In this document: one piece after another, positions 25,276-64,000 of the stretch | Layout of the letters: each line of letters starts with the position of its first letter | Numbering within the stretch: the first letter of the stretch is position 1 | Assembly: GCA_030704615.1 (NCBI GenBank) | Contig: CM060732.1 | Coordinates: 29,636,001-29,700,000, forward strand | From: Takakia lepidozioides | Taxonomy: Eukaryota > Plantae > Bryophyta | Direction of reading: 5' to 3' | Length of the DNA stretch: 64,000 bases | Program-made: the position numbers and the translations under genes | Notes under the pieces: model-generated | Database searches by the model: none | Told to the model about the DNA's origin: nothing | Seen by the model: the letters and a program-made list of their open reading frames with translations, nothing else

Positions 25276-25309
<34 letters not shown>

Positions 25310-42189: not shown

Positions 42190-44235
42190 CTGGCATGTAG
42201 GTCAACGCTGGTTCTTTAGAGATCCTTCACAATGGTAGGACAACAGTGTTGACAAGGTGAGCTTCCTTCATGTATTCTTCAAAGATGGAGGATGTCAATT
42301 GTCATCTACAAAAAAGGTGCGCGCCATGTTACCAACCTTGATGCAGCAGTGCCTTGGCTGTTTTCGAGCCGGAAATCGACCAAAGTGTGGGGAGCTATTC
42401 CGGACTCCCCACAACCAAAGGGAATTTCCACTCAGCCCATGTAGTCAAGGGTTGTGTGGGGGAGCAAAGGGGGGACCGTTATGTCCTGGTGAGCAGCCGA
42501 AGCTCCAAATTGGCCCGGCAGCTATAAACCATTTTTTTATCATCTCTTTCCACCATAGTCTGAAGAGTGAAAATGTGGTCAGAGTCGATCGGTTGCGACG
42601 GAAGCCTACTTGCACCTTTGCGGTATCATCCCACCTGCCAGCTCCCCTATAGATGTTTGATAGCAGCACATAAGTTGCAGCATCCTGTCGATCCCATTTG
42701 AGAATAGATCGTTCTGCAACCTCCACATCGCCATGAATTCTAAGCAAAGGTTTCCACACCACAACATCCGATTTGATGAAGTCCTCCGCTCATCCAATTG
42801 CCTGCACAGCCAAGGAGGTCCTCCTTGCAGTTAAAGTGCTCCACTCAGCCATTCTCTTAGTGGCGAATAATCGCCAGATTTCGACCTCAAAAAATAAAAT
42901 CGAATATTCTGTCGCAAATCCACTGTTTTTTCATGGATGAAATCGCCAAATTTCTCCAAATACAAAATAAATTATGGATGAATTCGCCAAATATGGATGA
43001 TATAATGGATGATGGCATATAGGTGGATGAATTAAAGTGGATGAACAGAATAAATGGCTATTTCCTGCAAAACTCTGTAGCCACTCGTGCTGTTTTCCAA
43101 ATTTCTTAAAAAAAACACTGGCTCCACTGTAGGAGTGAGGCCATGATCCTGACTCAGGGAGTTCATCCACTAAGCCAAAATGGCTACATGCACAGAGAAC
43201 ACATATAAAGGTGATATTGTCTGGCTTTGCCCTTCCATTTGCATCTCTTAAAATAGTTGCAGGACCTCCCTAGGACGACCATGCTTGGCATATCCTGCGA
43301 TCATTGCATTCTGGGTCACTACATTTCGTTCAGCCATGTTGTAAACGGTCCAATTCCAGCTTTGATAATGTTGACATAGACCCTTTTCCAGGGGACAAAT
43401 GCAAACGAACGCGAGCCAGTTGGGCTTCACCCTTCCTGCACCATTTCGTCATAGGTGTCCAAGGTCCACATATCCTGCAATCATCTCACTCTGTGAGACC
43501 TCAAATACTCCTGCATTTGGCTTACATGTTCAAGAGGGCACTGCCCGGAATGATATCTGGTACAGTTCCAGCGCATGGACCTTTTCCAGGGCTGCCAGGC
43601 CCACACCTGCAAACGCAGACGAATGTAACCTTGTCCAGCTTCACCCCTTCCTGTATCATTTGGTGGTAGGTCTCCCAGGCATTCCTACCACACCTATGCT
43701 GGCCATATCCTGTGATCATTGCACTCCATGAGACCACATCTCGTTCAGTCATACTGTCACACTGTCATTGCATCCTCCATGCTCCAGTATTTGGCATACT
43801 TGCCCATGATGGTGGTGTTCCGATTATATTTGGTACAATTCCAGTTTTCATGATGTCAATATTGACCTCCTTCCCCTTTTCCCACACACACACCTTGTGA
43901 ATGCGAATGAAGGTGACCTGGTGCAGCCTTAGCCTTTCCCACATCATTTGGTGATGGGTCTCCGAGGCATTCGTACCACACCTATATTGGTAAACCCTGC
44001 CATCATTATATCAAACGTGACTAGATCTCATTCAGGCATTTTGTCGAACACTTTGTGCATCTACGACGCTCCCGCTTTTGACATACATGTAGACAAAGGG
44101 TGTTGTGAAGAAACATGTTTGGCTTGAAACCACTTCGGATACCTGCACTTATGCAATAGGCAGACATGAGTATCTGAACCTGCAAAATGCCTCCTTGGCT
44201 CAGAATTTGAAGAGCCTCTTTGAGTTGTCCCATAG
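42190..44235 (-). pseudogene. Degenerate PLS-class PPR gene with E/E+ region (RNA-editing-factor type)
   Basis: Fragments in several frames: GFKPNMFLHNTL, ERDVVSWSAMITGYGQH, ERNVVTQNAMIAGYAKHGRPREVLQLF, AATYVLLSNIYRGAGRWDD and E+-like PRHCCIKVGNMARTFFVDD. Many stops, frameshifts and insertions. Confidence 0.85.
42846..43186. mobile_element. Probable MITE inside the PPR pseudogene
   Basis: Imperfect TIRs CAGCCATTCTCTTAGTGGCGAA / TTCATCCACTAAGCCAAAATGGCTA. AT-rich interior with TCGCCARAT and TGGATGA repeats. No clean TSD. Confidence 0.45.
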
Positions 44236-45287: not shown

Positions 45288-47122
45288 CTAGATTGGTTGG
45301 CCTTTGGGAGTGACAAGATCTTTGAGCCACATATAGATAGGAACAAGCACATAATAAATTGATGCTACAGTCCCCATGAGAAACCTGTAGACAAATAAGA
45401 GGGGGTTCGATGATCTTTTCACATCCTCTGCAATTGGTCCAAGCTGCAAACACAACAAAGCACAGGTATTGAGATAATCAAAATAAGCAATGCATTTCTT
45501 CCCAAATTCTAGTAATTGCAAAGGCAAACAAGGCAGTGTCCAATCATTGAATGCCTGCTGCAGCCTCCTTTTCCTGCAAGAAAGTTGTCTGCCAAATAAG
45601 AGGGGATATCTGCCTGAAAACCAGCTCCCAACCTCTCCCCAATTCTTTTCCTCATAATCGAATCCTTCTCTCAGTTCCACCCTTCACATCCTTGATGACC
45701 TGTTTGAATTCAGTACATACTGCAAAGATGAGAATGAAATACCTGCAATGGTGAGTCACCAGAGTCAGCCTTGATTCCAGTGACAGAGCAACCCATGATA
45801 AGACCATGCCTACGGACACCACGATACCATTTGGGCCCAATCCTCTTCAATTGGACATCCTTAAAACCAGCCTTAGAGAACCATTCGATGTACTCCTCCT
45901 CTGTAGGGAATAGCATCCACACATCTGCAAAGAATCGAGAGATCCAGAAGGTTGGATGGACAGGCCCGATAAGGCACGCCTTCCCACCCTTTTTAAGAAC
46001 TCTGTATGCTTCCTTGATGCCCCGTTGTGGCTCAGGCCAGTACTCAATGCTGCCAAAAGGTGAGAGTAAGATGGTTCAGTAAACCTTGCATTTAGTACCC
46101 CGCCAAATTTATAGGTATTGGCATGCAAACATCATTTTCTATAGACCACTTCATCCAAGGACTAGCAAGACGGGCAACCTCTTCTTACATCTTCTTCCCC
46201 GCCATGTGATTCTATGTGAGATAAGCGGTCCATTAGACAGCTGAACATTCTAAATGTTCACATTTCACTGCTGTACACACACACGCATGCACTGTTTTAC
46301 CAAACGATCAGGCATGAAGACTTTCCTACTATCGGCACACAATTTCCTTCGAGCCATATTTGTGTGGTCACCAGCTGACTAACGTAGCTTGACCCAAGTG
46401 TCCGTGCAGAATTCAATCAACTTCAACGTGGTGTTCATAGTCAAGAACTAAGTAGAGAATTTTAAAAGAATGCAATGATGGACACCGCACCTTCCAGCCG
46501 ACACATATCGATCTGCATAGTCCGTAGGAAATGGCAAGTTTTCGGCATCGCCTTCGATCATTGTGCATTGTTTCAAAGGCTCCTTCTCTTTGGCCTTCGC
46601 AAGCTGGTGAGGAGATTGATCCAGAATGGTTACGTTCTTGGCATCCACAGTCTTCACAATTCCGAGTGTTGCGAATCCGGTGCCCCCTCCTACATCTACC
46701 ACCACCAAATTGGGATCGCTCAAATCTGCTGGCTCCAACGCATCCTCTCTCATATCCTCTGTCCAGTGCCCGGGGTTTATAATATGGTCGTATATGATGG
46801 ACAAGAATCGATAGAACCAAAAGGCTTCCTGCTTGTGCTGGATGAACCGGGGCTGTGACGCAGCCCTTGAAACGCTCTGGCTTGCACCGCTCGCCCTTGC
46901 AGTCCGCACGGAGACACTAGATGCTCTTCTTGGCTGGAGCCCTGCTAATTGTGCGGGAAGAGGCCGGAAATTCATTGCCACTCTGTCCAAGGAGGATGAT
47001 GATCCTAGGCCTGCAGAGTAAGGTGAGAGAGACGAGCGTGGCATTGGAGGTGAGGCAGGAGAAGGCTTCATCCGGCATTGGAGAGCGGGACAGAGTGGTG
47101 TTGCGGGCAGCGAGGCAGCCAT
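45288..47122 (-). CDS. VTE3: MPBQ/MSBQ methyltransferase (plastoquinone/tocopherol synthesis), 3 exons: 47122-46491, 46049-45743, 45443-45288
   Basis: Transit peptide, then PRFIQHKQEAFWFYRFLSIIYDHIINPGHWTEDMR, VVDVGGGTGF, SAGS|IEYWPEPQRGI, WMLFPTEEEYIEWF, GPKWYRGVRRHGLIMGCSVTG, YYVLVPIYMWLKD. GT-AG introns keep the frame. Confidence 0.96.
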
Positions 47123-47364
47123 GGCTCCGGAGCGCGACGATCCTGCCACCACAACTACGCAATCCCTCTCCAGGATCCCCCAGCCATCAGCAACACACCG
47201 GTGATGACCAGTCGCCACGGACCGGGGGCGTGTGGGAGTGACTGGAAGTTGCAGGCGAGGTGACCGGGCGCTGTAGGTGAGGTGAAGTAAGTAGTTAGTG
47301 TGTACCGGGTGAACCCATCCCACGTGAAGCACCCGGTGGGTGGCTCATTTATAATAGTTACCGG

Positions 47365-49075
47365 TGTGGCCTGTGCCGTTGAGCAGGGACTCCACAAAAC
47401 TTCAAACCCAATTTGCCGCTTTTCATGAATTTCCAGTGACAAGATAAAGATAAAGTTTCTTTAACGTCCACTGAATTTAGTGATAGAAAGTACTTGAAAT
47501 TTGATATCTCCCACACCGCAGGTCCAAAAATTAGGAAACCACCTGGATGCACTGCTACTCATCAAAGGCTTTCCAGCGATATCAAGACCCCAGACAAAGG
47601 CCTTGCGTTTTGGGAGATCTCAACGACGCTACAAAGCAAAACAAAACAAACAAAACAAACTACCTTGCGTAATAGATAAGACTAGTGTGGCCTCTGTCGT
47701 TGAGCACATGTTGTACGATCATTTTATATTCCAGAAAGCCCATTTTGTTATTTCTAATGAATTTCTAGGGAAGATAATAGGAATAATGTAAGAACTTAAT
47801 GCACACGTGCAACCTCTGACATGATGGTACGCCGGTTTCCGGCATGTCAAATCTTCCCCACCCACTCTTGAGAGTGACATGGAAGTGAAAGAGTGTAAAC
47901 TGGAGTCGGGTGTGCACTGGGTTACACGACGAGGTGTGTACTCCACTTGGGGTTACATCGGGTTACACGACGAGGTGTGTAACTCCACTCGGGGTTACAG
48001 AGAATGGAGTGTAACTCCTCTCGATGTAACTCACACTTGGTCTCGAAATTTGACTAGGTCCAAATTTGTTTAAGTATAAAATGGACTTACCAGAGTTACA
48101 CGAGAAACCGGGGTTACAGAGGGTTACACCGATTGAAGGGTTACACTACCTGGGTTACACTAGAAGCACCTTCCATGAAGGATAAATCCCTGAACCCGGC
48201 CACCACAACTCTACCACCTTACCACCATGCTACCCACCACAGCTTGCAACCCACTTGGATTCTTAAGTATTTAATAGTGAAACCGAGGTAAGAGGGGGTG
48301 GGGAGCATTTGACAGGGGCCCCGCCGGAGGAGCCCAGGCTGCCGGCGAAAGTACTGTCAGATCACATGCGTCCATTAAGTTCTTACATTGAAATTCTAGT
48401 GACAAAACATAAGACACTCAATGAAAATCAATACCTTCCACACCAATATTCCAATTTACTATTATTTATGAATTTTCAATGATAAAAATAACTTGAAATT
48501 CAATATCTTCCACACCAATATTCTAGAGAAAACCCCAATTTACTATTATTTATGAATTTCCAAGGACAAAATTACCTGAAATTCAATATCTCTCACACCA
48601 CAGGTTTAAAAATATTATGAAACCGGCACCCCTGTTCATCAAGGATTTTCCAAAGGTATCAAGACCCTGAGCAGATGCCTCGCGGTTTGGAAATCCTCAA
48701 CAGCGCTACGAACAAAACAAAACAACGCAAACTACCAAACTTAATATATAGATGGTTTACACTAGACTTAGGATGGTTGAATGCATGCAAGGCTGCGGGC
48801 CTGTGCCGTTCAGCACATAGTCATTCTATATTGTAAAAAAAACCCAATTTGTTATTTTTCATGAATGTCTAGTGATAAAACGTACTCAAAATTCGATGTC
48901 TTCCACACCATAGGTCAAAAAATTATGAAACTGCCTCGATATACTTACCTCTACTCATCCAGGGTTTTCCAGCAGTATCAAGAACCTGAAATAAAATAAA
49001 AGAACCTGGGCACACAGGCGCATGCACGTGGTTTGAGAGATGCTACAAACAAATCAAAAACTACCAAACTGAATA
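47365..49075. repeat. Degenerate ~300-bp tandem repeat (about 4 copies) interrupted by an unrelated insertion at ~47770-48380
   Basis: Recurring GGCCT(G/C)TG(C/T)CGTT(G/C)AGCA (47368, 47689, 48798), ATATCT(T/C)CCACACC, TATCAAGA(C/A)CC and GCTAC..ACAAA blocks. Confidence 0.7.
47890..48165. repeat. Cluster of GGGTTACAC/GTGTAAC motifs, possibly the end of a MITE or DNA transposon
   Basis: About 10 GTTACA(C) motifs in both orientations, including a duplicated GGGTTACACGACGAGGTGTGTA. Confidence 0.45.
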
Positions 49076-49707
49076 GACGCTTCCCTACAAACAATATGGG
49101 ATATATCCCCAACAGATTTCTGCAGCGCTAAAGCTTGCTTCTAATTTGGTTTTTTTATTTTTGTACACCAGCCCCAGCAACCGGTGGGCGGGCCTTGAGG
49201 CCGAAACGGAAACCCCCTCTAGTCCTGCGCACATGACCAAGAAACGGGGCTGATCCGCTGGAAAAGTGGGCTGATCCGCCCTTGACACCGCTTCCCCGTG
49301 CTGATAGCGATATTCGCCCCGCGCCATCGCTCAGCCTGCGAGCTGATCCGACGAATAAAAGTAGATGAAAAAAAAAACCTTTTAGATGAAAAACAAAAGT
49401 TAGTTTTCATGTTAAAACAAAGCGTCTAGTCACCTAATGGCTCCACCCTAAAACTCTAAGTAGTAAATTTCCTTAAAATGTTATATTGAAATAACATAAT
49501 TACATATTCAAACTATATTTTAAACATATTCTACATAAGACAAAAATTTATTTCTTGTTTATTTATAAATAAAACCAGGGACAGAGGCCTGGTGAAACTA
49601 TTTTGGTATGAGTTAAATATTGATGTATAATATTATGAAACTGATATTTGGATTTACTAATTATTATTCAAATGCATTTGACACTGCTGAAATGCCTCTT
49701 GGCTTAA

Positions 49708-50753
49708 CCCCTAAAGGACGAGAGGTGTTTTTGGGTTTTTGGACAATTCCGGGACCCACCCTAACTCGTCAGCGGCTAGCTGCCCACCAACGTTCATCCA
49801 CTTTGATGAACCGTACAAACTGCTTTCTACCTACCAGATGCATAAACCCCCCAAATTTGGGGAGATTCAACCGTGTAGTTTGGGAGATTATAACATTTGA
49901 AGACGGTGCATTTTTTTGAAAATAGAAAAAACAAAGCAAAAGTTCATGTTTGACCAAGCAAATTATCTATGATCCCAAATTTTCCTGGGAGAAAAAGTGC
50001 TATATTCCTGTGAAGTGCACAATCCCAAACCCTCACACCAAATTTCACCCCAATCTGCCAAAATGAAAGGGGGGGTGCTTTGTATGTGACTAGAATGGGG
50101 GTCCAAAAAGAGACTTGCAAAGGAAATGGTATAGGCCCCATTGGGACCCCAAATTCTCCTTCATTTGGGAATTCCAACGGTCAGTCCCTCATAGGCCAAG
50201 AACTACACAAGCCTGCCCAAGAATTTCCCAAAAATTGCCTAAATCGCATTTGGGATGTGGGATTTTGTGAAATTTCCAGCCTCCTCCAGGTCAGGCAATC
50301 GGTGGCCGGAATTTCTCCTGAATCCGGTGACTTTTTCCGGGCCACACCGAGGTTTCCCATTATTTGCGAGGGCCAGCTCATTCCAGCTGTCTCCGTGTTT
50401 GTCGGCGTTTTGGGGAGGGCCTCACAAGCCCCCCACTCCAACCCCTGCCCCCGCCGCAAAATCCCACCCGCGTGGCCGCTGCCACCTGCCACGTCGACGG
50501 TCAACTGTCGTGCGCGCGCCCCCCCCCCCCCCCCCCCCCCAACCCACCCAAAATCCTGCAATTTCCAAACTTCAAAAAATTCCTGACGGCGGAGTTTTTC
50601 TCTTGTTGGGGGCGCCATAAAGACCTGCGTGTGCAGCTCGTTCAACGCTACATTTTTCGTTCAAGCCGCTCATTCATCGGACTTCATCTGTGCATGCTAC
50701 GGATGGATGAAAAATCGGGCCGACCCGATTCAGGTCGGCTCGTCGTTTAGGGG
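49708..50753. mobile_element. Non-autonomous piggyBac-type element, second family
   Basis: TTAA|CCCCTAAAGGACGAG ... CTCGTCGTTTAGGGG|TTAA (14/15-bp TIR; TTAA at 49704-49707 and 50754-50757). No transposase motifs. Confidence 0.85.
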
Positions 50754-51613
50754 TTAAAGTCCGTAGAGCCTTTTCCAATCGCACATAGCATCCAATCCAG
50801 AGAGAAACTGCACACAAAACATATGCAGCCAAATATTATATTCATAATGGGACCAAATGCCTAAGGTATTGTCCAGTGTTGGGCGGTTCTTGCCTTTGTG
50901 AAGGAACCTTCGGTTCCGGTTCCACAAATTTTTGAAGAGACGGTTCCGGATCCGGATCCGGTTATTTTTAATTAAGGCGGTTCCGATCCGGTTCAGGTTC
51001 TGACTTTTTAACATGGGGGCGGTTCCGGTTACCGGTTACCGGTTAGTTGCTGGAAAAAAAACACCGGTTCCCGGTTAGGTTCCGGTTCTTTTTAAAAAAT
51101 ATATTAAATTCTTTTAATTTTTTATTCTTCTGGAAAATTAGATGAACTGATCTGATTGGTCATACTGAGAATTTTCAACTAAAACCAGGGAATTTATTAG
51201 TAAAACAGAAGTAAATAAACTTATATGTTTTTTGTGATTGTCTTTTATGGTATATATAACTAGTTAAATACGCATGGTCTCCATTAAAAACGGAAAACCA
51301 AATATTTTATAAGTTTTCGTACGGTGTAGCAAAGAACAACTAAAACAAACTAACTACATAAGGATCTTAATTCAAAATACAAAACAAATTAAACATGTGT
51401 AATTCTATGGTTACCTTTTATGGTGCAGCAAAAGCACAACTAAAAAAAACTACATAAATTTGTTTTTTTTGGATGATGCTTTGTCAGTATAGCATACAAC
51501 AAACTAAGTACACGGGATATCACTGAAATTTTCAATAAAAATGACAAATAAACAAACTCCAATCAAAGGAGTATAATGTAATATGTTGAACAATAATTTA
51601 TCTCTAAGACAAA

Positions 51614-53947
51614 TCATTCTACCTCAAAGAGGTTTGCCTCTGCAATCAAGTCCTCATTCTCATCTAAGAGGACTTCTTCCCTATCCAAAAACTCTTTCAT
51701 GGAAGTACTAAAGCAACCAACTCTAGCATCATTTGGCCAATTCTTGACTACACTCACAAGCATATCAAGGTTTTCAATATTTAACCTACACCGTCTCAAG
51801 TTTGTTATGACACCTGCAATACTAAAAACCCTCTCAGCTTCAATCTGAGATCCAACTATGCCCAAGATTAGCCGTGCCAAAAATCCCACATACGGAAAGA
51901 GATACTCGTGTTCTTTCCACCATTTCAAAGGAGCCACGCACTCACCCTCAATTATCTTCGTCCTTCTGAAATGTGATAGTTGTTCTCTCACTACTGTCAA
52001 TGTCATGTCTTCATTGTGGTCATGCACACCAAATAAGGACATCTCGTCCATTGTGGAAGTGGGCTGTGATTGGGCCGGAGTATCCGGATGTAAGACCTTG
52101 AAACACTTTATCAAAAGAGGCTCTAACACCATGCTATCATATTGGGACACAATATGCAAAGCACGCTCTTTGCCCACATATTGTGATACCAATGACAACC
52201 CCTTGTAACGTGGGTCAAGCATAAGCGTGAGCATATTGTGAGCTTTGCGCGATTGAAACCCTTCCAAAAAAGAAAGAAATGGTTCCAAGACATATACCAC
52301 CTCTCGAGCCATCCGCCATTCCAACAATGTCAACTCTGTTGAGAAATCCCCCATGCAATGATCCACAGTTGCAGCCCTGGGAGCACTACTTCCTCGCATG
52401 CGAATTGTTGTGGCAATGGCTGCATTAAGAGCATCGGACAACAGCCAAAATCCCCCAGATTGATTCATAATGCACTCATGAACCACAGGCCCTAGAACTG
52501 TAGAAATTGATTGGGCAATGGCCCACACTTGTGGACTTGGTATGCGAGACTGCAGTGCCAATGAGGTTTGCCTAGAGTAACAAGTGATTATGGCTTGCCT
52601 AAACTCCAAAGTCTCTTGGAAGAGGATCACCTTGGAAGCAAACCGTGTCTTCACCGGAGTCTTCAGTTTGTGGGGATGAATGCCGCTGTCCACACATGCC
52701 TTTGCCCATTCTTGTCTCCCTTTGCCAATTTTTTTGGTCCAAGTAATGGTTTTTTGCAACTTTGATTGGGCATTTTTTATAGAAACCGATCTCATATCTG
52801 CGCATATTTTTGCATCATTTGTTGCATACTGGCAACACTTGGACATTGCATGCCCAAAACAGCTACCCACAAATGGAGAATCCAACCCCAAACACGCATA
52901 TGAAGCATTGGTCAAAGTGGCCAAGTTACCTCCCTCATCTTTGACGTAAGCAATAATGCGAGTATTGAGGCCATACTTCACAAGAAGATTGTTGACTTGA
53001 TGTGCCATGGCAGCCCCAGATATGTCAGGTGTCTCAAACATGCCAAGAGTCACATGACATTGCTCCCACTGTTCATTAATAAAGTGCGCTATGATGACAA
53101 AAGTGTCAGTTCCCCCTCTTGACGTCCACAAATCAAAACTCACGGAGCAAGTAGCACAACTCTGAAGAGATGGGGACATGTAGCGTTCTTTCGTCTTCTC
53201 TGCCAAGATTGGAATGGCCTCATTCACAAATGTCCGTCGAGAAGGGAAAACAATCCGAGGATTTTGCCTCAACACCATCCTTCTTAGCCAAGGGGATTCT
53301 ACCAAAGACAGTGGAACCAACTCCTTTGCAATGAACAAGACTAAATCCTCATTGAACTGCTTCTGTTGATCATCATTTTGGTTGTATGGAGTGGAGCTCC
53401 CAAAAAAGGAAACTATGTTTCCAGGAGTGGGGCTGGGCCTCTTTTTTGCTAGCCTACGGGCCTTCTCAGGTCCTTCATTTTCCCTCTCAATCCACCTACG
53501 CAAAACAATGTCATGTTCTTGATCCACATGCTTTCGAAGGGCAGAGATACCATTGGTTTTATTATAGGTCACAATGCCCTTCTTGCTTGCAGGAGTGACA
53601 CCAACATGATGACATAGAACACACCTCATTTGTTGTGGATTTGTTATGTCCACTGGAGCAGAGTCTTTTGTTGCATAGAATGCCCATGTCGAAGCAGTGC
53701 GATTGTGGGGCTTCCAAAAATCCCGTTGTTTTTCAAGTACTGGGAGCTGCGCCTCCACATCCAACACCGTGTGTGATGGCGAAACTGTGGAAGATGACAT
53801 TGCAGCCGAGGCTTGATGAGCTGATATAAATGAGATTGCATGATGAGCATCCTCCGTAACATGGCACTCCACCAAAGCTCTCTCATTATCAACTTTGACG
53901 TCAAGAACAACTTCCCTTTCTAGTTCATCGAAAATATTGGGCTCCAT
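51614..53947 (-). CDS. hAT transposase with BED zinc finger, 777 aa
   Basis: BED finger (WAFY..CVLC..GISALRKHVDQEH), catalytic SVSFDLWTS and YVKDEGGNL, CFGH (CxxH), MLDPRYK, and the hATC dimerization region PLKWWK..QIEAERVFS. Confidence 0.95.
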   Translation of the reverse strand: MEPNIFDELEREVVLDVKVDNERALVECHVTEDAHHAISFISAHQASAAMSSSTVSPSHTVLDVEAQLPVLEKQRDFWKPHNRTASTWAFYATKDSAPVDITNPQQMRCVLCHHVGVTPASKKGIVTYNKTNGISALRKHVDQEHDIVLRRWIERENEGPEKARRLAKKRPSPTPGNIVSFFGSSTPYNQNDDQQKQFNEDLVLFIAKELVPLSLVESPWLRRMVLRQNPRIVFPSRRTFVNEAIPILAEKTKERYMSPSLQSCATCSVSFDLWTSRGGTDTFVIIAHFINEQWEQCHVTLGMFETPDISGAAMAHQVNNLLVKYGLNTRIIAYVKDEGGNLATLTNASYACLGLDSPFVGSCFGHAMSKCCQYATNDAKICADMRSVSIKNAQSKLQKTITWTKKIGKGRQEWAKACVDSGIHPHKLKTPVKTRFASKVILFQETLEFRQAIITCYSRQTSLALQSRIPSPQVWAIAQSISTVLGPVVHECIMNQSGGFWLLSDALNAAIATTIRMRGSSAPRAATVDHCMGDFSTELTLLEWRMAREVVYVLEPFLSFLEGFQSRKAHNMLTLMLDPRYKGLSLVSQYVGKERALHIVSQYDSMVLEPLLIKCFKVLHPDTPAQSQPTSTMDEMSLFGVHDHNEDMTLTVVREQLSHFRRTKIIEGECVAPLKWWKEHEYLFPYVGFLARLILGIVGSQIEAERVFSIAGVITNLRRCRLNIENLDMLVSVVKNWPNDARVGCFSTSMKEFLDREEVLLDENEDLIAEANLFEVE

Positions 53948-54389
53948 GACATAAAAAGCTTGTGGAACAACTCATGTGTAAAAACAATGCAAACAAAGAA
54001 TCCAAAAGGCATTTAATAATTGTGCACAACTCATATATTTACAAAAATTTGGAATGGTATATGGCTGGCCAAAACGAAAGTGTGGGGAGAGACACCGCAC
54101 TGCTCAATTTATTATTTCATATTGAGCTGAATGTTACATACATGGCCCACATTTAGATCTACGTTATTTTTTTTATCTAGTACATGTACATTTACATTTT
54201 CAAATTACAAAAACTACCTAGCAAGTTGGGGGTGGACCAGTCTTATGCTTCAGTGGTCAGCTTGGCTACTTCATGCCTTGGGAGATGATCTGCAATGCCC
54301 CCACCACATATAAATAAATCAGTCCTTGTTGTACCACAACATGAAGAGTTATAACTAAAAATTATGAAGCTTTAAAGTGGGGTGATTGT

Positions 54390-56060
54390 CCACAAGAGGT
54401 AGGGGCTGGCTGTCAAGCCTTCTTGATATTTGTGCTCCCCTTTCCGAGTTCAAACTTTCACTATGAGAGGAGGAGCAAATCATCCCTCTGTTGTACCACA
54501 CATTGGAAAAAATAAAATAAAAAACTAAGCTATTAAAGGGTGGGGGCTTACCATAGGATGAGGGGGCTGGTTAGCGGGCTCTAAACTCGCACTCCTCCTT
54601 CTTGTGTGTGATCTACATAGCAACAGAGTAGGGGGCTGATCAGCCCCTTGCTATGCCAATTTTCTAAAAAAAAATATATATGCAACATTGAATTAGGGGC
54701 ATGCTTACATGTGTGGTGGAACGGGGGCTGGTTGGCAGGCCTCCCTACTTGCCCTCTTTCCCTCCCATGCACGATCTACAATAGCAAAAGAGCAAGGGGC
54801 TAATCAGCTCCTCTTATATCACAAACTTAAAATAATTAAGAAAATAAAGAACAATGAAGGGGAAGTACACGCGGGTAATGGGGCTGGTTGGCGGGTCAAG
54901 AGGCCTCCTATTTCTGCTCCCTTCCCGAGTGCAACATATCACTATGAGGAAGGGCGAATCAGCCTTTTGTTGTACCACACATTGGAAAGAATAACATTAA
55001 AAAACTAAGATAAAGGGTGGGGGCTTACTACAAGATGAGAGGGGCTGGTTGACGTGCTTTTTTACTTGCACTAGACGTCCTTCTTGTGTGTGATCTGCAT
55101 TAGCAACGGCTAATCAGCCCTTGCTATACCAATTTTATGGGGGGAAAAAATGAAGGGGGATGCTTACATGTGCGGTGCAAGAGGGGCTGGTTGGCCAGCC
55201 TTCCTACTTGCCCTCCTTTCCCTCCTATGCACGATCAGCCGTAGCGCAAGAGCAATGGGCTAATCAGCCCCTCTTTTAACAAAAATTTAAACAACTAAAA
55301 AAATAAAGCTCAATGAAAGGGAGTTACAAGCGGGTAATGGTGGCTGGTTGGCAGGTCCCTCCCTACTTTGGGCTCCCTCCCTCTCATGCAGAATCTGCTA
55401 TAATAGAAGCCACAGGGGCTATCTTATCAACCCCCAATTGGAATTAAAAAAATTTAAAGAAAGGGAAGATACTTACCAGTGGGTAATGTGGGCTGGTTGG
55501 CGGGCCCCTCTTTGCTTGTGCTCCCTCCAATGTAAAATCTACCATAGTGGAGCAAGGGGCTATCAGCCCCTTGGTATATCATCAAAGAAAACAGGAAAAA
55601 AAAAAGAAAAAAAAGAAGAATGATGAGCAATGATTACCATGGACCAAGGGGCCTGGTTGCAGGTGGGCCCTCCTTACTCGTCCTCCCTACCTCTTGCACC
55701 ACATGCCATAGCAGAAAAGGAGGAAGCTGATTAGCTTCATGGTGAACTAAAAGCTAAAAATAGTAAAATAACCAAAAGTGGTGGATGCTTACCAACAAGG
55801 GGCTGGTTGACGACGGGGCTAGGTTGCGCGGGCCCTCCTGCTGGCACTTCCTCCCTCCAATGCGCCACTTACCACAATACAAGAGCATGGGGCCATTAGC
55901 TCCGCTGAACCAAAAAATTAAAAAAAAACAAGAACATGGTGGATGCTCACCAACAACAAGCGACGGCTGGTTGGCGGGGCCCTCCTGCTCACACTCCCTC
56001 CCTTTGTGTCCACCACCTGCCACAGCAGCAGAAGAGAGATCAGCCCCCTCTTGTGCGATA
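54390..56060 (-). repeat. About 11 degenerate ~155-bp tandem units inside the hAT 5' region (mirror at ~56980-58640)
   Basis: CAACCAGCCCC core followed by GTAAG-like sites at 57084, 57241, 57396, 57557, 57706, 57865, 58003, 58164, 58324 and 58481 in the right copy. A 3-unit higher-order repeat is visible. Confidence 0.85.
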
Positions 56061-56536
56061 AACTGAGAAGAAAAGAAACAAACAACACATTAAATCAATC
56101 AACCTAAGAGGGAAAGAGAATGGAGATGGAGATGAAATGAGAGCGAGAGAGAAATCAAACAATAAAGTAGAAGATGGAGACATGGAACACAAACCTTACC
56201 TGGACTGGAGTAGCGAGCAAGATGTATGCGAGAGAGAGCGAGCTGGATGAGTTGTAGAGACACTTAGGGCTACAGCCCATGGGTGGAACCGGAACCGGAA
56301 CCGCTTTGGAGTCCCCAAACCCGGTTCCCACACATGTGGTCGTAGCTGGAACCGCCGGTTCCGGTTCCTACGCAATCCCCAATTTCCGGTTCCGGTTCTG
56401 CACAGGCGGGTCCGGTTCCGGTCCGGTTCCACATAACCGGAACCGAAACCGGCGGTTACCCGGGGCCCAGGCGGGTAACCGCCCAACACTGGAAATAACT
56501 TCCTACAAATCCTAAACGGTTGATAAGGGACAATAC

Positions 56537-59500
56537 CAGTGTTGGGCGGTTACCCGCCTGGGCCCCGAGTAACCGCCGGTTCCGGTTCCGGTTATGTGGA
56601 ACCGGACCGGAACCGGACCCGCCTGTGCAGAACCGGAACCGGAACCGGAAATTGGGGATTGCTTGGGAACCGGAACCGGCGGTTCCAGCTATGACCACAT
56701 GTGTGGGAACCGGGTTTGGGGACTCCAAAGCGGTTCCGGTTCCGGTTCCACCCATGGGCTGTAGCCCTAAGTGTCTCTACAACTCATCCAGCTCGCTCTC
56801 TCTCGCATACATCTTGCTCGCTACTCCAGTCCAGGTAAGGTTTGTGTTCCATGTCTCCATCTTCTACTTTATTGTTTGATTTCTCTCTCGCTCTCATTTC
56901 ATCTCCATCTCCATTCTCTTTCCCTCTTAGGTTGATTGATTTAATGTGTTGTTTGTTTCTTTTCTTCTCAGTTTATCGCACAAGAGGGGGCTGATCTCTC
57001 TTCTGCTGTTGTGGCAGGTGGTGGACACAAAGGGAGGGAGTGTGAGCAGGAGGGCCCCGCCAACCAGCCGTCGCTTGTTGTTGGTGAGCATCCACCATGT
57101 TCTTGTTTTTTTTTAATTTTTTGGTTCAGCGGAGCTAATGGCCCCATGCTCTTGTATTGTGGTAAGTGGCGCATTGGAGGGAGGAAGTGCCAGCAGGAGG
57201 GCCCGCGCAACCAGCCCCGTCGTCAACCAGCCCCTTGTTGGTAAGCATCCACCACTTTTGGTTATTTTACTATTTTTAGCTTTTAGTTCACCATGAAGCT
57301 AATCAGCTTCCTCCTTTTCTGCTATGGCATGTGGTGCAAGAGGTAGGGAGGACGAGTAAGGAGGGCCCACCTGCAACCAGGCCCCTTGGTCCATGGTAAT
57401 CATTGCTCATCATTCTTCTTTTTTTTCTTTTTTTTTTCCTGTTTTCTTTGATGATATACCAAGGGGCTGATAGCCCCTTGCTCCACTATGGTAGATTTTA
57501 CATTGGAGGGAGCACAAGCAAAGAGGGGCCCGCCAACCAGCCCACATTACCCACTGGTAAGTATCTTCCCTTTCTTTAAATTTTTTTAATTCCAATTGGG
57601 GGTTGATAAGATAGCCCCTGTGGCTTCTATTATAGCAGATTCTGCATGAGAGGGAGGGAGCCCAAAGTAGGGAGGGACCTGCCAACCAGCCACCATTACC
57701 CGCTTGTAACTCCCTTTCATTGAGCTTTATTTTTTAGTTGTTTAAATTTTTGTTAAAAGAGGGGCTGATTAGCCCATTGCTCTTGCGCTACGGCTGATCG
57801 TGCATAGGAGGGAAAGGAGGGCAAGTAGGAAGGCTGGCCAACCAGCCCCTCTTGCACCGCACATGTAAGCATCCCCCTTCATTTTTTCCCCCCATAAAAT
57901 TGGTATAGCAAGGGCTGATTAGCCGTTGCTAATGCAGATCACACACAAGAAGGACGTCTAGTGCAAGTAAAAAAGCACGTCAACCAGCCCTCTCATCTTG
58001 TAGTAAGCCCCCACCCTTTATCTTAGTTTTTTAATGTTATTCTTTCCAATGTGTGGTACAACAAAAGGCTGATTCGCCCTTCCTCATAGTGATATGTTGC
58101 ACTCGGGAAGGGAGCAGAAATAGGAGGCCTCTTGACCCGCCAACCAGCCCCCATTACCCGCGTGTACTTCCCCTTCATTGTTCTTTATTTTCTTAATTAT
58201 TTTAAGTTTGTGATATAAGAGGAGCTGATTAGCCCCTTGCTCTTTTGCTATTGTAGATCGTGCATGGGAGGGAAAGAGGGCAAGTAGGGAGGCCTGCCAA
58301 CCAGCCCCCGTTCCACCACACATGTAAGCATGCCCCTAATTCAATGTTGCATATTTTTTTTTTCTTAGAAAATTGGCATAGCAAGGGGCTGATCAGCCCC
58401 CTACTCTGTTGCTATGTAGATCACACACAAGAAGGAGGAGTGCGAGTTTAGAGCCCGCTAACCAGCCCCCTCATCCTATGGTAAGCCCCCACCCTTTAAT
58501 AGCTTAGTTTTTTATTTTATTTTTTCCAATGTGTGGTACAACAGAGGGATGATTTGCTCCTCCTCTCATAGTGAAAGTTTGAACTCGGAAAGGGGCACAA
58601 ATATCAAGAAGGCTTGACAGCCAGCCCCTACCTCTTGTGGACAATCACCCTACTTTAAAGCTTCATAATTTTTAGTTATAACTCTTCATGTTGTGGTACA
58701 ACAAGGACTGATTTATTTATATGTGGTGGGGGCATTGCAGATCATCTCCCAAGGCATGAAGTAGCCAAGCTGACCACTGAAGCATAAGACTGGTCCACCC
58801 CCAACTTGCTAGGTAGTTTTTGTAATTTGAAAATGTAAATGTACATGTACTAGATAAAAAAAATAACGTAGATCTAAATGTGGGCCATGTATGTAACATT
58901 CAGCTCAATATGAAATAATAAATTGAGCAGTGCGGTGTCTCTCCCCACACTTTCGTTTTGGCCAGCCATATACCATTCCAAACTTTTGTAAATATATGAG
59001 TTGTGCACAATTATTAAATGTCTTTTGGATTCTTTGTTTGCATTGTTTTTACACAGGAGTTGTTCCACAAGCTTTTTATGTCATGGAGCCCAATATTTTC
59101 GATGAACTAGAAAGGGAAGTTGTTCTTGACGTCAAAGTTGATAATGAGAGAGCTTTGGTGGAGTGCCATGTTGCGGAGGATGCTCATCATGCAATCTCAT
59201 TTATATCAGCTCATCAAGCCTCGGCTGCAATGTCATCTTCCACAGTTTCCCATCACACACGGTGTTGGATGTGGAGGCGCAGCTCCCAGTACTTGAAAAA
59301 CAACGGGATTTTTGGAAGCCCCACAATCGCACTGCTTCGACATGGGCATTCTATGCAACAAAAGACTCTGCACCATTGGACATAACAAATCCACAACAAA
59401 TGAGGTGTGTTCTATGTCATCATGTTGGTGTCACTCCTGCAAGCAAGAAGGGCATTGTGACCTATAATAAAACCAATGGTATCTCTGCCCTTCGAAAGCA

Positions 59501-62145
59501 TGTGGATCAAGAACATGACATTGTTTTGCGTAGGTGGATTGAGAGGGAAAATGAAGGACCTGAGAAGGCCCGTAGGCTAGCAAAAAAGAGGCCCAGCCCC
59601 ACTCCTGGAACATAGTTTCCTTTTTTGGGAGCTCCACTCCATACAACCAAAATGATGATCAACAGAAGCAATTCAATGAGGATTTAGTCTTGTTCATTGC
59701 AAAGGAGTTGGTTCCACTGTCTTTGGTAGAATCCCCTTGGCTAAGAAGGATGGTGTAGAGGCAAAATCCTCGGATTGTTTTCCCTTCTCGACGGACATTT
59801 GTGAATGAGGCCATTCCAATCTTGGCAGAGAAGACGAAAGAGCGCTACATGTCCCCATCTCTTCAGAGTTGTGCTACTTGCTCCGTGAGTTTTGATTTGT
59901 GGACGTCAAGAGGGGGAACTGACACTTTTGTCATCATAGCGCACTTTATTAATGAACAGTGGGAGCAATGTCATGTGACTCTTGGCATGTTTGAGACACC
60001 TGACACATCTCGGGCTGCCATGGCACATCAAGTCAACAATCTTCTTGTGAAGTATGGCCTCAATACTCGCATTATTGCTTACGTCAAAGATGAGGGAGGT
60101 AACTTGGCCACTTTGACCAATGCTTCATGTGCGTGTTTGGGGTTGGATTCTCCATTTGTGGGTAGCTGTTTTGGGCATGCAATGTCCAAGTGTTGCCAGT
60201 ATGCAACAAATGATGCAAAATATGCGCAGATATGAGATCGGTTTCTATAAAAAATGCCCAATCAGAGTTGCAAAAAACCATTACTTGGACCAAAAAATTT
60301 GGCAAAGGGAGACAAGAATGGGCAAAGGCATGTGTGGACAGCGGCATTCATCCCCACAAACTGAAGACTCCAGTGAAGACACGGTTTCTTCCAAGGTGAT
60401 CCTCTTCCAAGAGACTTTGGAGTTTAGGCAAGCCATAATCACTTGTCACTCTAGGCAAACCTCATTGGCACTGCAGTCTCGCATACCAAGTCCACAAGTG
60501 TGGGCCATTGCCCAATCAATTTCTACAGTTCTAGGGCCTGTGGTTCATGAGTGCATTATGAATCAATCTGGGGGATTTTGGCTATTGTCCGATGCTCTTA
60601 ATGCAGCCATTGCCACAACAATTCGCATGCGAGGAAGTAGTGCTCTCAGGGCTGCAACTGTGGATCATTGCATGGGGGATTTCTCAACAGAGTTGACATT
60701 GTTGGAATGGCGGATGGCTCGAGAGGTGGTATATGTCTTGGAACCATTTCTTTCTTTTTTGGAAGGGTTTCAATCGCGCAAAGCTCACAATATGCTCGCG
60801 CTTATGCTTGACCCACGTTACAAGGGGTTGTCATTGGTATCACAATATGTGGGCAAAGAGCGTGCTTTGCATATTGTGTCCCAATATGATAGCATGGTGT
60901 TATAGCCTCTTTTGATAAAGTGTTTCAAGGTCTTACATCCGGATACTCCGGCCCAATCACAGCCCACTTCCACAATGGACGAGATGTCCTTATTTGGTGT
61001 GCATGACCACAATGAAGACATGACATTGACAGTAGTGAGAGAACAACTATCACATTTCAGAAGGACGAAGATAATTGAGGGTGAGTGCGTGGCTCCTTTG
61101 AAATGGTGGAAAGAACACGAGTATCTCTTTCCGTATGTGGGATTTTTGGCACGGCTAATCTTGGGCATAGTTGGATCTCAGATTGAAGCTGAGAGGGTTT
61201 TTAGTATTGCAGGTGTCATAACAAACTTGAGACGGTGCAGGTTAAATATTGAAAACCTTGATATGCTTGTGAGTGTAGTCAAGAATTGGCCAAATAATGC
61301 TAGAGTTGGTTGCTTTAGTACTTCCATGAAAGAGTTTTTGGATAGGGAAGAAGTCCTCTTAGATGAGAATGAGGACTTGATTGCAGAGGCAAACCTCTTT
61401 GCGGTAGAATGATTTGTCTTAAAGATAAATTATTGTTCAACATATTACATTATATTCCTTTGATTGGAGTTTGTTTATTTGTCATTTTTATTGAAAATTT
61501 CAGTGATATCCCGTGTACTTAGTTTGTTGTATGCTATACTGACAAAGCATCATCCAAAAAAAACAAATTTATGTAGTTTTTTTTAGTTGTGCTTTTGCTG
61601 CACCATAAAAGGTAACCATAGAATTACACATGTTTAATTTGTTTTGTATTTTGAATTAAGATCCTTATGTAGTTAGTTTGTTTTAGTTGTTCTTTGCTAC
61701 ACCGTACGAAAACTTATAAAATATTTGGTTTTCCGTTTTTAATGGAGACCATGCGTATTTAATTAGTTGTATATACCATAAAAGACAATCACAAAAAACA
61801 TATAAGTTTATTTACTTCTGTTTTACTAATAAATTCCCTGGTTTTAGTTGAAAATTCTCAGTATGACCAATCAGATCAGTTCATCTAATTTTCCAGAAGA
61901 ATAAAAAAATTAAAAGAATTTAATATATTTTTAAAAAAGAACCGGAACCTAACCGGAACTGGTGTTTTTTTTCCAGCAACTAACCGGTAACCGGAACCAC
62001 CCCCATGTTAAAAAGTCAGAACCTGAACCGGACCGGAACCGCCTTAATTAAAAATAACCGGATCCGGATCCGGAACCGTCTCTTCAAAAATTTGTGGAAC
62101 CGGAACCGAAGGTTCCTTCACAAAGGCAAGAATCGCCCAACACTG
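56537..62145 (+). mobile_element. hAT transposon, right copy with 8-bp TSD
   Basis: Same TIRs with one substitution in the outer one. TSD GACAATAC at 56529-56536 and 62146-62153. Confidence 0.95.
59083..61412 (+). pseudogene. Disrupted hAT transposase, mirror of 51614-53947
   Basis: Frameshifts near 59250, 59610, 60220 and 60390, and in-frame TAG stops at 59756-59758 and 60903-60905. Confidence 0.9.
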
Positions 62146-62265
62146 GACAATACCTTAGGCATTTGGTCCCATTATGAATATAATATTTGGCTGTATATGT
62201 TTTGTGTGCAGTTTCTCTCTGGATTGGATGCTATGTGCGATTGGAAAAGGCTCTACGGACTTTAA

Positions 62266-63299
62266 CCCCTAAACGACGAGCCGACCTGAATCGGGTCGGC
62301 CCGATTTTTCATCCATCCGTAGCATGCACAGATGAAGTACGATGAATGAGCGGCTTGAACGAAAAATGTAGCGTTGAACGAGCTGCACACGCAGGTCTTT
62401 ATGGCGCCCCCAACAAGAGAAAAACTCCGCCGTCAGGAATTTTTTGAAGTTTGGAAATTGCAGGATTTTGGGTGGGTTGGGGGGGGGGGGGGGGGCACGG
62501 CAGTTGCCCGTCGACGTGGCAGGTGGCAGCGGCCACGCGGGTGGGATTTTGCGGCGGGGGCAGGGGTTGGAGTGGGGGGCTTGTGAGGCCCTCCCCAAAA
62601 CGCCGACAAACACGGGGACAGCTGGAATGAGCTGGCCCTCGCAAATAATGGGAAACCTCGGTGTGGCCCGGAAAAAGTCACCGGATTCAGGAGAAATTCC
62701 GGCCACCGATTGCCTGACCTGGAGGAGGCCGGAAATTTCACAAAATCCCACATCCCAAATGCGTTTTAGGCAATTTTTGGGAAATTCTTGGGTAGGCTTG
62801 TGTAGTTCTTGGCCTATGAGGGACTGACCGTTGGAATTCCCAAATGAAGGAGAATTTGGGGTCCCAATGGTGCCTATACCATTTCCTTTGCAAGTCTCTT
62901 TTTGGACCCCCATTCTAGTCACATACAAAGCACCCCCCCTTTCATTTTAGCAGATTGGGGTGAAATTTGGTGTGAGGGTTTGGGATTGTGCACTTCACAG
63001 GAATATAGCACTTTTTCTCCCAGGAAAATTTGGGATCATGGATAATTTGCTTGGTCAAACATGAACTTTTGCTTTGTTTTTTCTATTTTCAAAAAAATGC
63101 ACCGTCTTCAAATGTTATAATCTCCCAACTACACGGTTGAATCTCCCCAAATTTGGGGGGTTTATGCATCTGGTAGGTAGAAAGCAGTTTGTACGGTTCA
63201 TCAAAGTGGATGAACGTTGGTGGGCAGCTAGCCGCTGACGAGTTAGGGTGGGTCCCGGAATTGTCCAAAAACCCAAAAACACCTCTCGTCCTTTAGGGG
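62266..63299. mobile_element. Mirror copy of the non-autonomous piggyBac-type element
   Basis: TTAA 62262-62265 | CCCCTAAACGACGAG ... CTCGTCCTTTAGGGG | TTAA 63300-63303. Confidence 0.85.
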
Positions 63300-64000
63300 T
63301 TAAGCCAAGAGGCATTTCAGCAGTGTCAAATGCATTTGAATAATAATTAGTAAATCCAAATATCAGTTTCATAATATTATACATCAATATTTAACTCATA
63401 CCAAAATAGTTTCACCAGGCCTCTGTCCCTGGTTTTATTTATAAATAAACAAGAAATAAATTTTTGTCTTATGTAGAATATGTTTAAAATATAGTTTGAA
63501 TATGTAATTATGTTATTTCAATATAACATTTTAAGGAAATTTACTACTTAGAGTTTTAGGGTGGAGCCATTAGGTGACTAGACGCTTTGTTTTAACATGA
63601 AAACTAACTTTTGTTTTTCATCTAAAAGGTTTTTTTTTTCATCTACTTTTATTCGTCGGATCAGCTCGCAGGCTGAGCGATGGCGCGGGGCGAATATCGC
63701 TATCAGCACGGGGAAGCGGTGTCAAGGGCGGATCAGCCCACTTTTCCAGCGGATCAGCCCCGTTTCTTGGTCATGTGCGCAGGACTAGAGGGGGTTTCCG
63801 TTTCGGCCTCAAGGCCCGCCCACCGGTTGCTGGGGCTGGTGTACAAAAATAAAAAAACCAAATTAGAAGCAAGCTTTAGCGCTGCAGAAATCTGTTGGGG
63901 ATATATCCCATATTGTTTGTAGGGAAGCGTCTATTCAGTTTGGTAGTTTTTGATTTGTTTGTAGCATCTCTCAAACCACGTGCATGCGCCTGTGCCCAGG

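Follow-up and report, generated by a model that had tools for sequence, protein, structure and literature searches.

For maize and rice stocks, in which both junctions have been followed genetically, there is ample documentation of inverted duplications made by transposons. To our knowledge, natural and fixed duplications of this type with base-level footprints have rarely been described, and a literature search found no bryophyte example of a natural transposon-made inverted duplication. The publications on which the preliminary description of this locus relied do exist, and cover inverted duplications produced by sister-chromatid transposition (SCT) together with 'Ac killer' (bioRxiv 10.1101/2020.01.07.897926) and the rice Ds pairs (PMC3239180). 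In fission yeast, nearby inverted repeats fuse into palindromes that retain the original spacer and mirror one flank, according to PMC4351560, which describes Mizuno 2009. The locus analysed here lies at the end of a 64,000-nt stretch of moss DNA (the window) and is a clean yet incomplete case of a known kind.

Anatomy of the inverted duplication

The sequences at 49005–56491 and 56537–64000 are reverse complements of each other, and the centre is a head-to-head pair of hAT copies with 45 bp between them (Table 1). Arm-versus-arm blastn returns one gapped HSP of 7496 columns with 98.79% identity, 52 mismatches and 39 gap positions, and the inverted repeat is also recovered as 14 ungapped blocks in one chain. 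Each arm is composed of a flank (F) of about 1.9 kb and an hAT element of about 5.6 kb, and the layout of the locus is F'-TSD'-hAT'-GAAATAAC-29 bp-TSD-hAT-TSD-F. The right arm reaches the last base of the window and the outer breakpoints lie beyond it, which makes the repeat length of at least 15 kb a lower bound; mirroring of the flank extends at least 1.85 kb past the element. The flank copies differ at one place by 11 bp, within a poly-C/CG tract at 50513, and Pfam matched no family to the flank ORFs at 50080–50750 or to their mirror. The preliminary description had reported head-to-head copies 45 bp apart with a mirrored outer flank, a true TSD on the right copy, and a left copy that shares this outer flank while its inner TIR lies at a new site. 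The alignment and the element termini bear this out, with an ambiguity of 1 bp (G) at the left joint.

Table 1. Features of the inverted duplication, in window coordinates
Feature	Position	Strand	Remarks
Flank F, left copy	49005..50865	-	Mirrors 62154-64000; 11 substitutions in 1855 aligned bases (0.59%); start set by the window end on the other arm
Substitution-free tract, 963 bp	49005..49967		Mirror 63041-64000; P(second gap >= 963) = 0.00015
GTATTGTC, outer end of left copy	50866..50873		Reverse complement of the TSD GACAATAC
Left hAT copy, 5618 bp	50874..56491	-	3' end at 50874, 5' end at 56491; 15-bp TIRs; subterminal GGTTCCGG clusters
Transposase ORF of left copy, intact	51614..53947	-	777 aa; reads away from the centre; hAT C-terminal dimerisation domain
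Substitution-free tract, 1347 bp	54678..56024		Mirror about 57010-58354; candidate gene-conversion tract; P(longest gap >= 1347) = 0.0015 given 53 random substitutions
GAAATAAC, 8-mer joined to left copy's 5' TIR	56492..56499	+	New target site
Unique, non-palindromic DNA, 29 bp	56500..56528	+	Remnant of the right copy's original upstream flank; no second copy in the window
GACAATAC, inner TSD of right copy	56529..56536	+	
Right hAT copy, 5609 bp	56537..62145	+	5' end at 56537; outer TIR with one G-to-A change at 62133
Transposase frame of right copy, broken	59083..61412	+	Two stop codons and four single-base gaps when compared with the left copy
GACAATAC, outer TSD of right copy	62146..62153	+	
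Flank F, right copy	62154..64000	+	From mirror alignment; cut by the window end

The elements belong to the hAT superfamily, with an 8-bp TSD, short TIRs and a transposase carrying the C-terminal dimerisation domain. The TSD of the right copy is perfect, with GACAATAC on either side. The 15-bp TIR (CAGTGTTGGGCGGTT) is perfect at 50874, 56491 (-) and 56537 and has one mismatch at the fourth end, and a motif scan of the window found clusters of GGTTCCGG confined to the four element ends. The hAT insertion is older than the duplication because the same TSD/TIR junction is present in both arms. The left transposase matches PF05699 (E 3e-10, 40.2 bits, cut-off 21.4) and is 44–60% identical to hAT proteins of Ceratodon and Diphasiastrum, its homologues being annotated as hAT/BED. 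The dN/dS of the left ORF is 0.66 (14 non-synonymous and 6 synonymous differences), which is indistinguishable from neutrality. A conserved cysteine has been lost from the left copy through C350Y. An exact-protein database look-up for the transposase, DPH1 and CDPK matched no record. The best matches of the host gene DPH1 are moss proteins (66–69%), pointing to a bryophyte.

The 45-bp spacer at 56492–56536 contains GAAATAAC, the 29 bp and GACAATAC in that order; the left TIR ends at 56491 and the right TIR begins at 56537. The spacer is not self-complementary and is unique within the window. Other copies of GAAATAAC occur in the window only at 47747 (-), 49488 (+) and 63512 (-), none of the three beside a TIR. 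At the GAAATAAC joint no base is missing from the end of the left 5' TIR, with the single G shared, and the new 8-mer resembles the TSD in that G-A-N-A-W-W-A-C is common to both. Base-exact joining of this TIR to a new 8-mer is, as judged from the sequence, a mark of transposase strand transfer, and the central joint is clearly the work of a transposon. This statement covers the central joint and does not extend to the duplication as a whole. Short-spacer fold-back inversions are common in other systems, and a transposase-independent fold-back, in which a break is resected and snap-back priming occurs on 1 nt of homology, could also leave the 1 bp shared at the joint. Such an event would have had to end at the TIR terminus by chance, but the joint lies within 1 bp of that terminus with the TIR intact, for which we estimate a random-breakpoint probability in the 7.5-kb arm of about 1e-3, and this origin is scarcely credible.

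Divergence between the arms

The arms had been described as differing by substitutions as well as indels, and the alignment indeed contains 53 substitutions and 16 indel events. The substitutions comprise 37 transitions and 16 transversions (P = 6e-8 against 1:2), and their rates in the flank (0.59%) and the element (0.75%) were counted as equal. The GC allele is carried by the left arm at 19 sites and by the right arm at 18. Polarisation with 16 homologues identifies derived amino acids at residues 309, 350 and 574 in the left arm and at residues 226, 311, 457, 609 and 740 in the right arm. Variants specific to an arm are present less than 150 bp from the centre on both sides. Arm-specific positions flanking the spacer include 56342/56692, 56446/56582 and 56460/56568. 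Two tracts are free of substitutions (Table 1); tandem repeats were considered as a source of such a tract and rejected, none having been detected. Divergence was checked along the left element for a step of the kind that a crossover point would leave, and none was found, which counts against the reinsertion and fusion discussed below. One-base indels are equally dense inside and outside the substitution-free tracts, and 13 of the 16 indel events are bases missing from the right arm (P = 0.02), a pattern that points to noise in the consensus of an insufficiently polished repeat. The symmetry of the differences, the derived residues in both arms and the two substitution-free tracts favour a real and old divergence with conversion, so that the arm differences look like divergence of about 0.7–1% plus gene conversion rather than a fold-back read.

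The same data bear on the possibility of an assembly artefact, in which only a head-to-head hAT pair (or something other) would truly be present and the assembly path would have crossed from one copy into its reverse-complement counterpart, so that the flank would not occur twice in this arrangement. This would be the in silico equivalent of inverted-repeat fusion and would give an identical picture, and the noise-like indels agree with it. Reused reads, however, predict arms identical apart from noise, whereas the observed substitutions have a biological spectrum, place derived states in both arms and include the flank. The arm-specific variants close to the centre, the absence of any N in the window and a spacer of genomic DNA ending in a TSD also argue against threading, which is unlikely. 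A palindromic read with a missed adapter was rejected; the length of 45 bp is that of an adapter, yet the spacer is genomic and ends in the TSD. A haplotype misjoin is made less likely, barring the sequencing of a mixture of wild plants, by the fact that the dominant plant body of bryophytes is haploid. The locus is very probably a real structure, and a TE-associated one.

Routes to the central joint

Sister-chromatid or hybrid-end transposition of a single element is topologically impossible, as the right copy retains GACAATAC and the flank at its 3' end. All products of single-element SCT were enumerated for a target 37 bp upstream and none keeps the right copy's own 3' TSD and flank, because every product moves the right copy's 3' end to the target. 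SCT using the directly oriented ends of a pre-existing head-to-head pair was also rejected, since it predicts a centre of one element or of three. From the original inference of a natural TE-made duplication, what survives is a structure that very probably is real and linked to a TE, with a TE joint at its centre.

A one-step aberrant transposition, as put forward in the preliminary description, could still have moved the 5' end of a sister copy, with the 3' flank attached, to GAAATAAC, its partner being either the 3' end of a second element or none. This would be SCT as described by Zhang and Peterson, with a second family element farther out, or a one-ended event finished by copying and repair. 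We know of no documented case of one-ended hAT integration in vivo. The breakpoint falls exactly at the transposon terminus, where the left 5' TIR adjoins a TSD-like 8-mer, the uniform divergence over element and flank fits a single event, and no route other than two-element SCT leads to a balanced chromosome in a single step. SCT inverted duplications with 8-bp TSDs are also documented in maize and rice (bioRxiv 10.1101/2020.01.07.897926; PMC3239180). SCT would, however, bring 5' and 3' termini of different copies to one target, and both 3' ends visible in the window keep the original TSD and flank; at the right copy, GACAATAC and F at the 3' end exclude the single-element version. With two elements, the arm should contain another 3' end of the family, and none is found in 1–49004. 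A partner-end search with the TIR 18-mer at up to 3 mismatches gave nothing beyond chance, and a 9-mer TIR search with 2 mismatches yielded noise only. The whole element, the flank and the spacer gave nothing beyond chance, and no second spacer copy, in blastn against 1–49004, and a subterminal motif search of the same region found no cluster. With no family end or motif cluster in 1–49004, a partner for two-element SCT would lie more than 49 kb away, possibly beyond 64000. The reciprocal GTTATTTC/TIR junction is absent from the window, in which neither GAAATAAC nor GTTATTTC occurs in a TIR-adjacent reciprocal position on either strand; the expected reciprocal position is beyond the window end. 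One-step aberrant transposition is possible but doubtful.

At least two routes other than SCT yield an identical centre, namely reinsertion followed by inverted-copy fusion, and fold-back duplication followed by a transposon-adjacent deletion. For the latter, a transposon-independent fold-back would have copied the element, the right flank and some upstream DNA, and a later deletion would have run from the left 5' end to GAAATAAC. The enumerated single-element SCT products include a flanking deletion that keeps the 3' flank and has a new 5' flank at the 8-mer, which when mirrored is the state of the left copy, and the route would account for the deletion beyond the spacer proposed in the preliminary description. 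It needs two independent rare events at the same place, however, and is distinctly improbable.

The reading that we prefer, tentatively and with somewhat less than even confidence, is a genuine and fairly old inverted segmental duplication seeded by hAT through local reinsertion and subsequent fusion. The element first inserted at GACAATAC, as the perfect TSD shows. Transposase would then have integrated an inverted second copy at GAAATAAC, which lies 37 bp upstream, by ordinary local reinsertion to give a head-to-head pair; the precise TIR joint is visible, and the second end would presumably have integrated normally. The resulting 5.6-kb inverted repeat with its 45-bp spacer may have permitted a fold-back between the copies, through sister-chromatid exchange or a replication template switch, by which the outer flank of the left copy would have been replaced by the mirrored right flank. 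A further switch or break, beyond the window, would have closed the structure. The arms would then have diverged by about 0.7–1%, with arm-to-arm conversion probably clearing differences in the two tracts where none are seen.

The complete left TIR at the joint appears to fit transposase integration, and a unique asymmetric spacer is retained at the centre with one flank mirrored, as in inverted-repeat fusion. None of the tests possible within the window contradicts reinsertion and fusion, and the postulated intermediate, a left copy with GAAATAAC on both sides and upstream DNA, is not observed there. Simple fusion gives a dicentric or acentric chromatid, and therefore a second, unseen event is needed. 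The long palindrome with its 45-bp spacer has evidently been stable here, and the case for an inevitable fusion of the shorter pair is the weaker for it.

Hairpin potential and likeness to known systems

The locus shares with the killer loci Muk and Ack an inverted duplication of transposon sequence. It could be a fixed natural killer locus in a bryophyte if aberrant hAT transposition made the palindrome and read-through from a flanking promoter produced hairpin RNA and siRNAs able to silence all members of the family, a reading that we consider highly unlikely. The ORFs run away from the centre, and therefore the element's own promoters cannot make the hairpin. If true, this reading would carry the Mu killer and Ac killer mechanism beyond laboratory stocks of maize, to early-diverging land plants in the wild, and if transcribed across the centre the locus could be a natural source of silencing RNA. 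Should a transposase-made event be borne out by the outer junctions, the locus would show hAT elements remodelling bryophyte chromosomes as McClintock's Ac/Ds do in maize, and it would also be a dated case (arms about 0.7–1% diverged) of a long palindrome with a 45-bp spacer surviving in a plant genome. Muk is, like this locus, a natural inverted duplication that includes the 5' region of a DNA transposon, but the copy is incomplete and its transcription, driven by a flanking promoter, yields a hairpin, whereas any transcription across the centre of the moss locus is hypothetical.

The maize Ac/fAc SCT alleles p1-ww-id1 and p1-ww-id4 ('Ac killer'; Zhang and Peterson 1999; bioRxiv 10.1101/2020.01.07.897926) likewise involve the hAT superfamily. 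As at the moss locus, their inverted duplication breaks exactly where a transposon ends, the target measures 8 bp, and the 5' part of the element is present as inverted repeats. The ends used in the maize alleles came from two elements (Ac and fAc), whereas no second element is visible here. The centre of the maize duplication is an excision footprint between fused flanks, in contrast to the two complete copies that face each other across 45 bp of original flank in the moss. The Ac inverted repeats in maize lie inside a composite insertion from aborted re-replication and are transcribable from the Ac promoter or a flanking one, whereas the element promoters here point outward.

The inverse Ds pairs in rice OsRLG5 (PMC3239180) and the double-Ds breakers of maize are also close inverted hAT copies that serve as substrates for rearrangement, and inverted duplications with two or three element copies have been recovered from them. 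Those cases were induced in transgenic or laboratory stocks and both new junctions were sequenced, whereas the moss locus is natural and its centre alone is visible. Inverted-repeat fusion in yeast (Mizuno et al. 2009, 2013, as described in PMC4351560) likewise leaves a short unique spacer at the centre and one flank mirrored beyond the repeats. The yeast palindromes, which are acentric or dicentric chromosomes, reach the chromosome end and are unstable, whereas the moss structure is interstitial and old, and an interstitial palindrome must have a second junction.

Extent and anatomy of the palindrome

The repeat finder identified an inverted block chain at 49013-63994 (97-100% complementary) whose arms come within 43 nt of each other at the centre. 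When 48001-56514 was aligned, with gaps, to the reverse complement of 56515-64000, the result was a single alignment of 7496 columns (98.79% identity, 52 mismatches, 39 gap positions) that starts at 49005 and matches the right-hand sequence up to its last base, 64000. Because the right-hand sequence is used to 64000, the left boundary at 49005 is set by the window end only; the arm length seen is a minimum, and both arms are bounded by the window end. The window contains no N.

Alignment and sequence reading bear out the preliminary description of inverted arms carrying two hAT copies 45 bp apart, which are head to head since both reading frames point away from the centre. The right copy has, as described, a true target-site duplication (TSD), with GACAATAC on both sides; the left copy shares the outer flank, with GTATTGTC outside, and its inner terminal inverted repeat (TIR) lies at a new site, with the 8-mer GAAATAAC inside. 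That account is refined by a 1 bp (G) ambiguity at the new joint. The TIR is a perfect 15 bp. The inner-end 18-mer lies at 56474-56491 (-) and 56537-56554 (+) and recurs at 50874 (+) with three mismatches, and the outer terminal repeat of the right copy has a private change at 62133. Across the window, subterminal GGTTCCGG-type motifs cluster at the four element ends only (21 matches against 0.18 expected). TSD, terminal repeats and dimerisation domain together identify the element as an ordinary member of the hAT superfamily, and the best relatives of the left-copy transposase are lycophyte and moss hAT proteins (44-60% identity). Codon 350 of the left ORF (52900) encodes Tyr, as against Cys in the right copy and in 13 of 16 homologues; given this C-to-Y change, the left transposase may be inactive though its ORF looks intact.

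Features of the window
Feature	Position	Strand	Remarks
Calcium-dependent protein kinase ORF	1458-3215		long, uninterrupted; kinase and four EF hands
RlmN-like radical-SAM protein ORF	19855-21231		long, uninterrupted
Diphthamide synthase DPH1 ORF	35263-36816		long, uninterrupted
PPR E-motif fragment	42448-42762	-
Class I methyltransferase fragment	46451-47332	-
GTATTGTC	50866-50873		reverse complement of GACAATAC; outside left copy, then same flank as right copy
Left hAT element	50874-56491		3' end outermost; sequence reading
Left transposase ORF	51614-53947	-	777 aa, intact; hAT dimerisation domain
GAAATAAC	56492-56499		adjoins left inner TIR, complete to final base
Spacer, 45 bp	56492-56536		not self-complementary; single occurrence in window
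TSD GACAATAC, right copy	56529-56536, 62146-62153		sequence reading
Right hAT element	56537-62145		5' end at 56537; sequence reading

The kinase, RlmN-like and DPH1 ORFs are apparently intronless, which is unusual among plant nuclear genes, and the DPH1 host gene matches moss proteins best (66-69%, compared with 61-63% for liverworts). Two LINE-like segments (7571-8982 and 25325-26616), in direct orientation and separated by about 17.6 kb, share 98-100% identity; a third piece, at 32361-32660, has diverged more, and an ORF of the LINE-like region (25217-25954) carries a reverse-transcriptase domain. The piggyBac, the RlmN-like gene and the LINE lie left of the palindrome in the window. Should the palindrome continue outwards, its left arm would take in the PPR and methyltransferase fragments.

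Differences between the arms

The arms differ by both substitutions and indels, as previously described, with 53 substitutions and 16 indel events counted over 49005-56491. Transitions outnumber transversions 37 to 16, where random error would give 1:2 (P = 6e-8), substitutions are equally frequent in flank (0.59%) and element (0.75%), and they are symmetric, with the G/C allele on the left in 19 cases and on the right in 18. When 16 homologues are used to polarise the 14 amino-acid differences, derived residues 309, 350 (the conserved cysteine) and 574 fall in the left arm, and derived states at residues 311, 457 and 740 plus two stop codons in the right. Judged from the aligned arms, these features point to real mutation.

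Arm divergence is 0.71% overall and 1.0% excluding two substitution-free tracts at 54678-56024 (1347 bp, P = 0.0015) and 49005-49967 (963 bp, P = 0.00015). A search for tandem repeats that account for these tracts found none, and arm-to-arm gene conversion would be their obvious reading. If a rate of 5e-9 to 1e-8 per site per year is assumed for this species, the duplication would date back between a few hundred thousand and roughly one million years. The dN/dS of the ORF between arms is 0.66 (14 non-synonymous, 6 synonymous), indistinguishable from neutral decay.

Because a chimeric fold-back read, or a mis-thread reusing the same reads, predicts identical arms, two diverged copies of element and flank are truly present in the sample, and because arm-specific variants lie <150 bp from the spacer on both sides, every read crossing the centre samples both. 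The dominant plant body of bryophytes is haploid, and a haplotype misjoin is accordingly less probable, unless the sequenced material was wild and mixed, as it may have been. One-base indels are equally dense within and beyond the substitution-free tracts, and in 13 of the 16 indel events it is the right arm that lacks the bases (P = 0.02), two observations that leave some weight to an assembly artefact, in which the graph path would run from one inverted copy into the other; reused reads, however, predict identical arms rather than 53 mutation-like substitutions with derived states in both, and such an artefact is unlikely. The indels may be consensus noise from a poorly polished repeat, their lopsidedness against the symmetric substitutions may mean that the arms were polished to different degrees, and the right copy's four frameshifts may be spurious; both of its stop codons come from substitutions, not indels. 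Six differences disable the ORF, four of them one-base gaps and two of them stop codons, and every one falls in the right copy, at 59250-60903, with none in the left. A CG/poly-C tract at 50513-50531 (mirrored near 62496) differs by 11 bp between arms, and multi-base indels within the subterminal motif arrays (7 bp at 51025, 6 bp at 56383) look like slippage.

Origin of the central junction

The junction of TSD, repeat and flank is common to both arms, so the hAT insertion at GACAATAC predates the duplication. The left 5' repeat meets GAAATAAC with nothing lost or filled in, the kind of joint that strand transfer by a transposase produces, and the 8-mers GACAATAC and GAAATAAC are alike (G-A-N-A-W-W-A-C). 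A two-step origin is tentatively preferred. An ordinary local reinsertion of the hAT copy in inverted orientation at GAAATAAC would create the head-to-head pair, after which the two inverted copies would exchange, or replication would switch template between them. The outcome would be exactly flank'-TSD'-element'-GAAATAAC-29 bp-TSD-element-TSD-flank.

One-step aberrant transposition is a weaker candidate. The transposition origin proposed in the preliminary description retains the TIR-precise joint to a new 8-mer in its favour, but its single-element hybrid-end model fails and no partner end was found in the 49 kb to the left. For a target 37 bp upstream, with the 5' end taken from one sister copy of the element and the 3' end from the other, the enumerated products are a 37-bp deletion accompanied by a circle, a chromatid in which the inverted target has received the 3' end of the right copy, or one-element fused chromatids; the model fails because none of these retains the right 3' end on GACAATAC and flank, which is observed here. 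Two-element sister-chromatid transposition (SCT), the Zhang-Peterson reaction with a second family element farther out in the flank, yields the observed centre and leaves the chromosome balanced, but predicts that element within both arms. In the 49 kb left of the arm, blastn with the whole element returned only chance matches of <=28 nt, and no GGTTCCGG-type motif cluster, second spacer copy, or GAAATAAC or GTTATTTC adjoining a repeat end was found; the reciprocal TIR junction suggested earlier would be expected beyond the window end. The partner end used to assign structures to the SCT class was likewise not found in these 49 kb. Because the locus is interstitial, all routes but two-element SCT require another junction, which is unseen. 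A fold-back duplication that arose independently of the transposon, with a later transposon-adjacent deletion reaching from the left copy's 5' end to GAAATAAC, would give the same centre but is improbable, and a chance, transposase-independent fold-back ending <=1 bp from the terminus (probability of order 1e-3 by our estimate) is very improbable indeed.

Comparison with known inverted duplications

The layout of published maize SCT duplications, which speaks against a one-step origin, is unlike that seen here: at their centre, fused flanks enclose an excision footprint, and Ac inverted repeats sit in composite insertions from aborted re-replication (bioRxiv 10.1101/2020.01.07.897926), whereas here two complete copies face each other across a 45-bp spacer. 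At 'killer' loci, hairpin RNA arises by promoter read-through of both arms (bioRxiv 10.1101/2020.01.07.897926). Because both transposase genes point outwards here, the element promoters are unable to make a hairpin, and a putative silencing hairpin RNA would have flank read-through as its only option. The second reaction of the preferred two-step route would be the fusion of nearby inverted repeats known from fission yeast (Mizuno 2009, as PMC4351560 describes it). Transposon-seeded inverted duplication is a known event in maize (bioRxiv 10.1101/2020.01.07.897926) and rice (PMC3239180) stocks, and the present rearrangement is a natural, base-resolved case of it.
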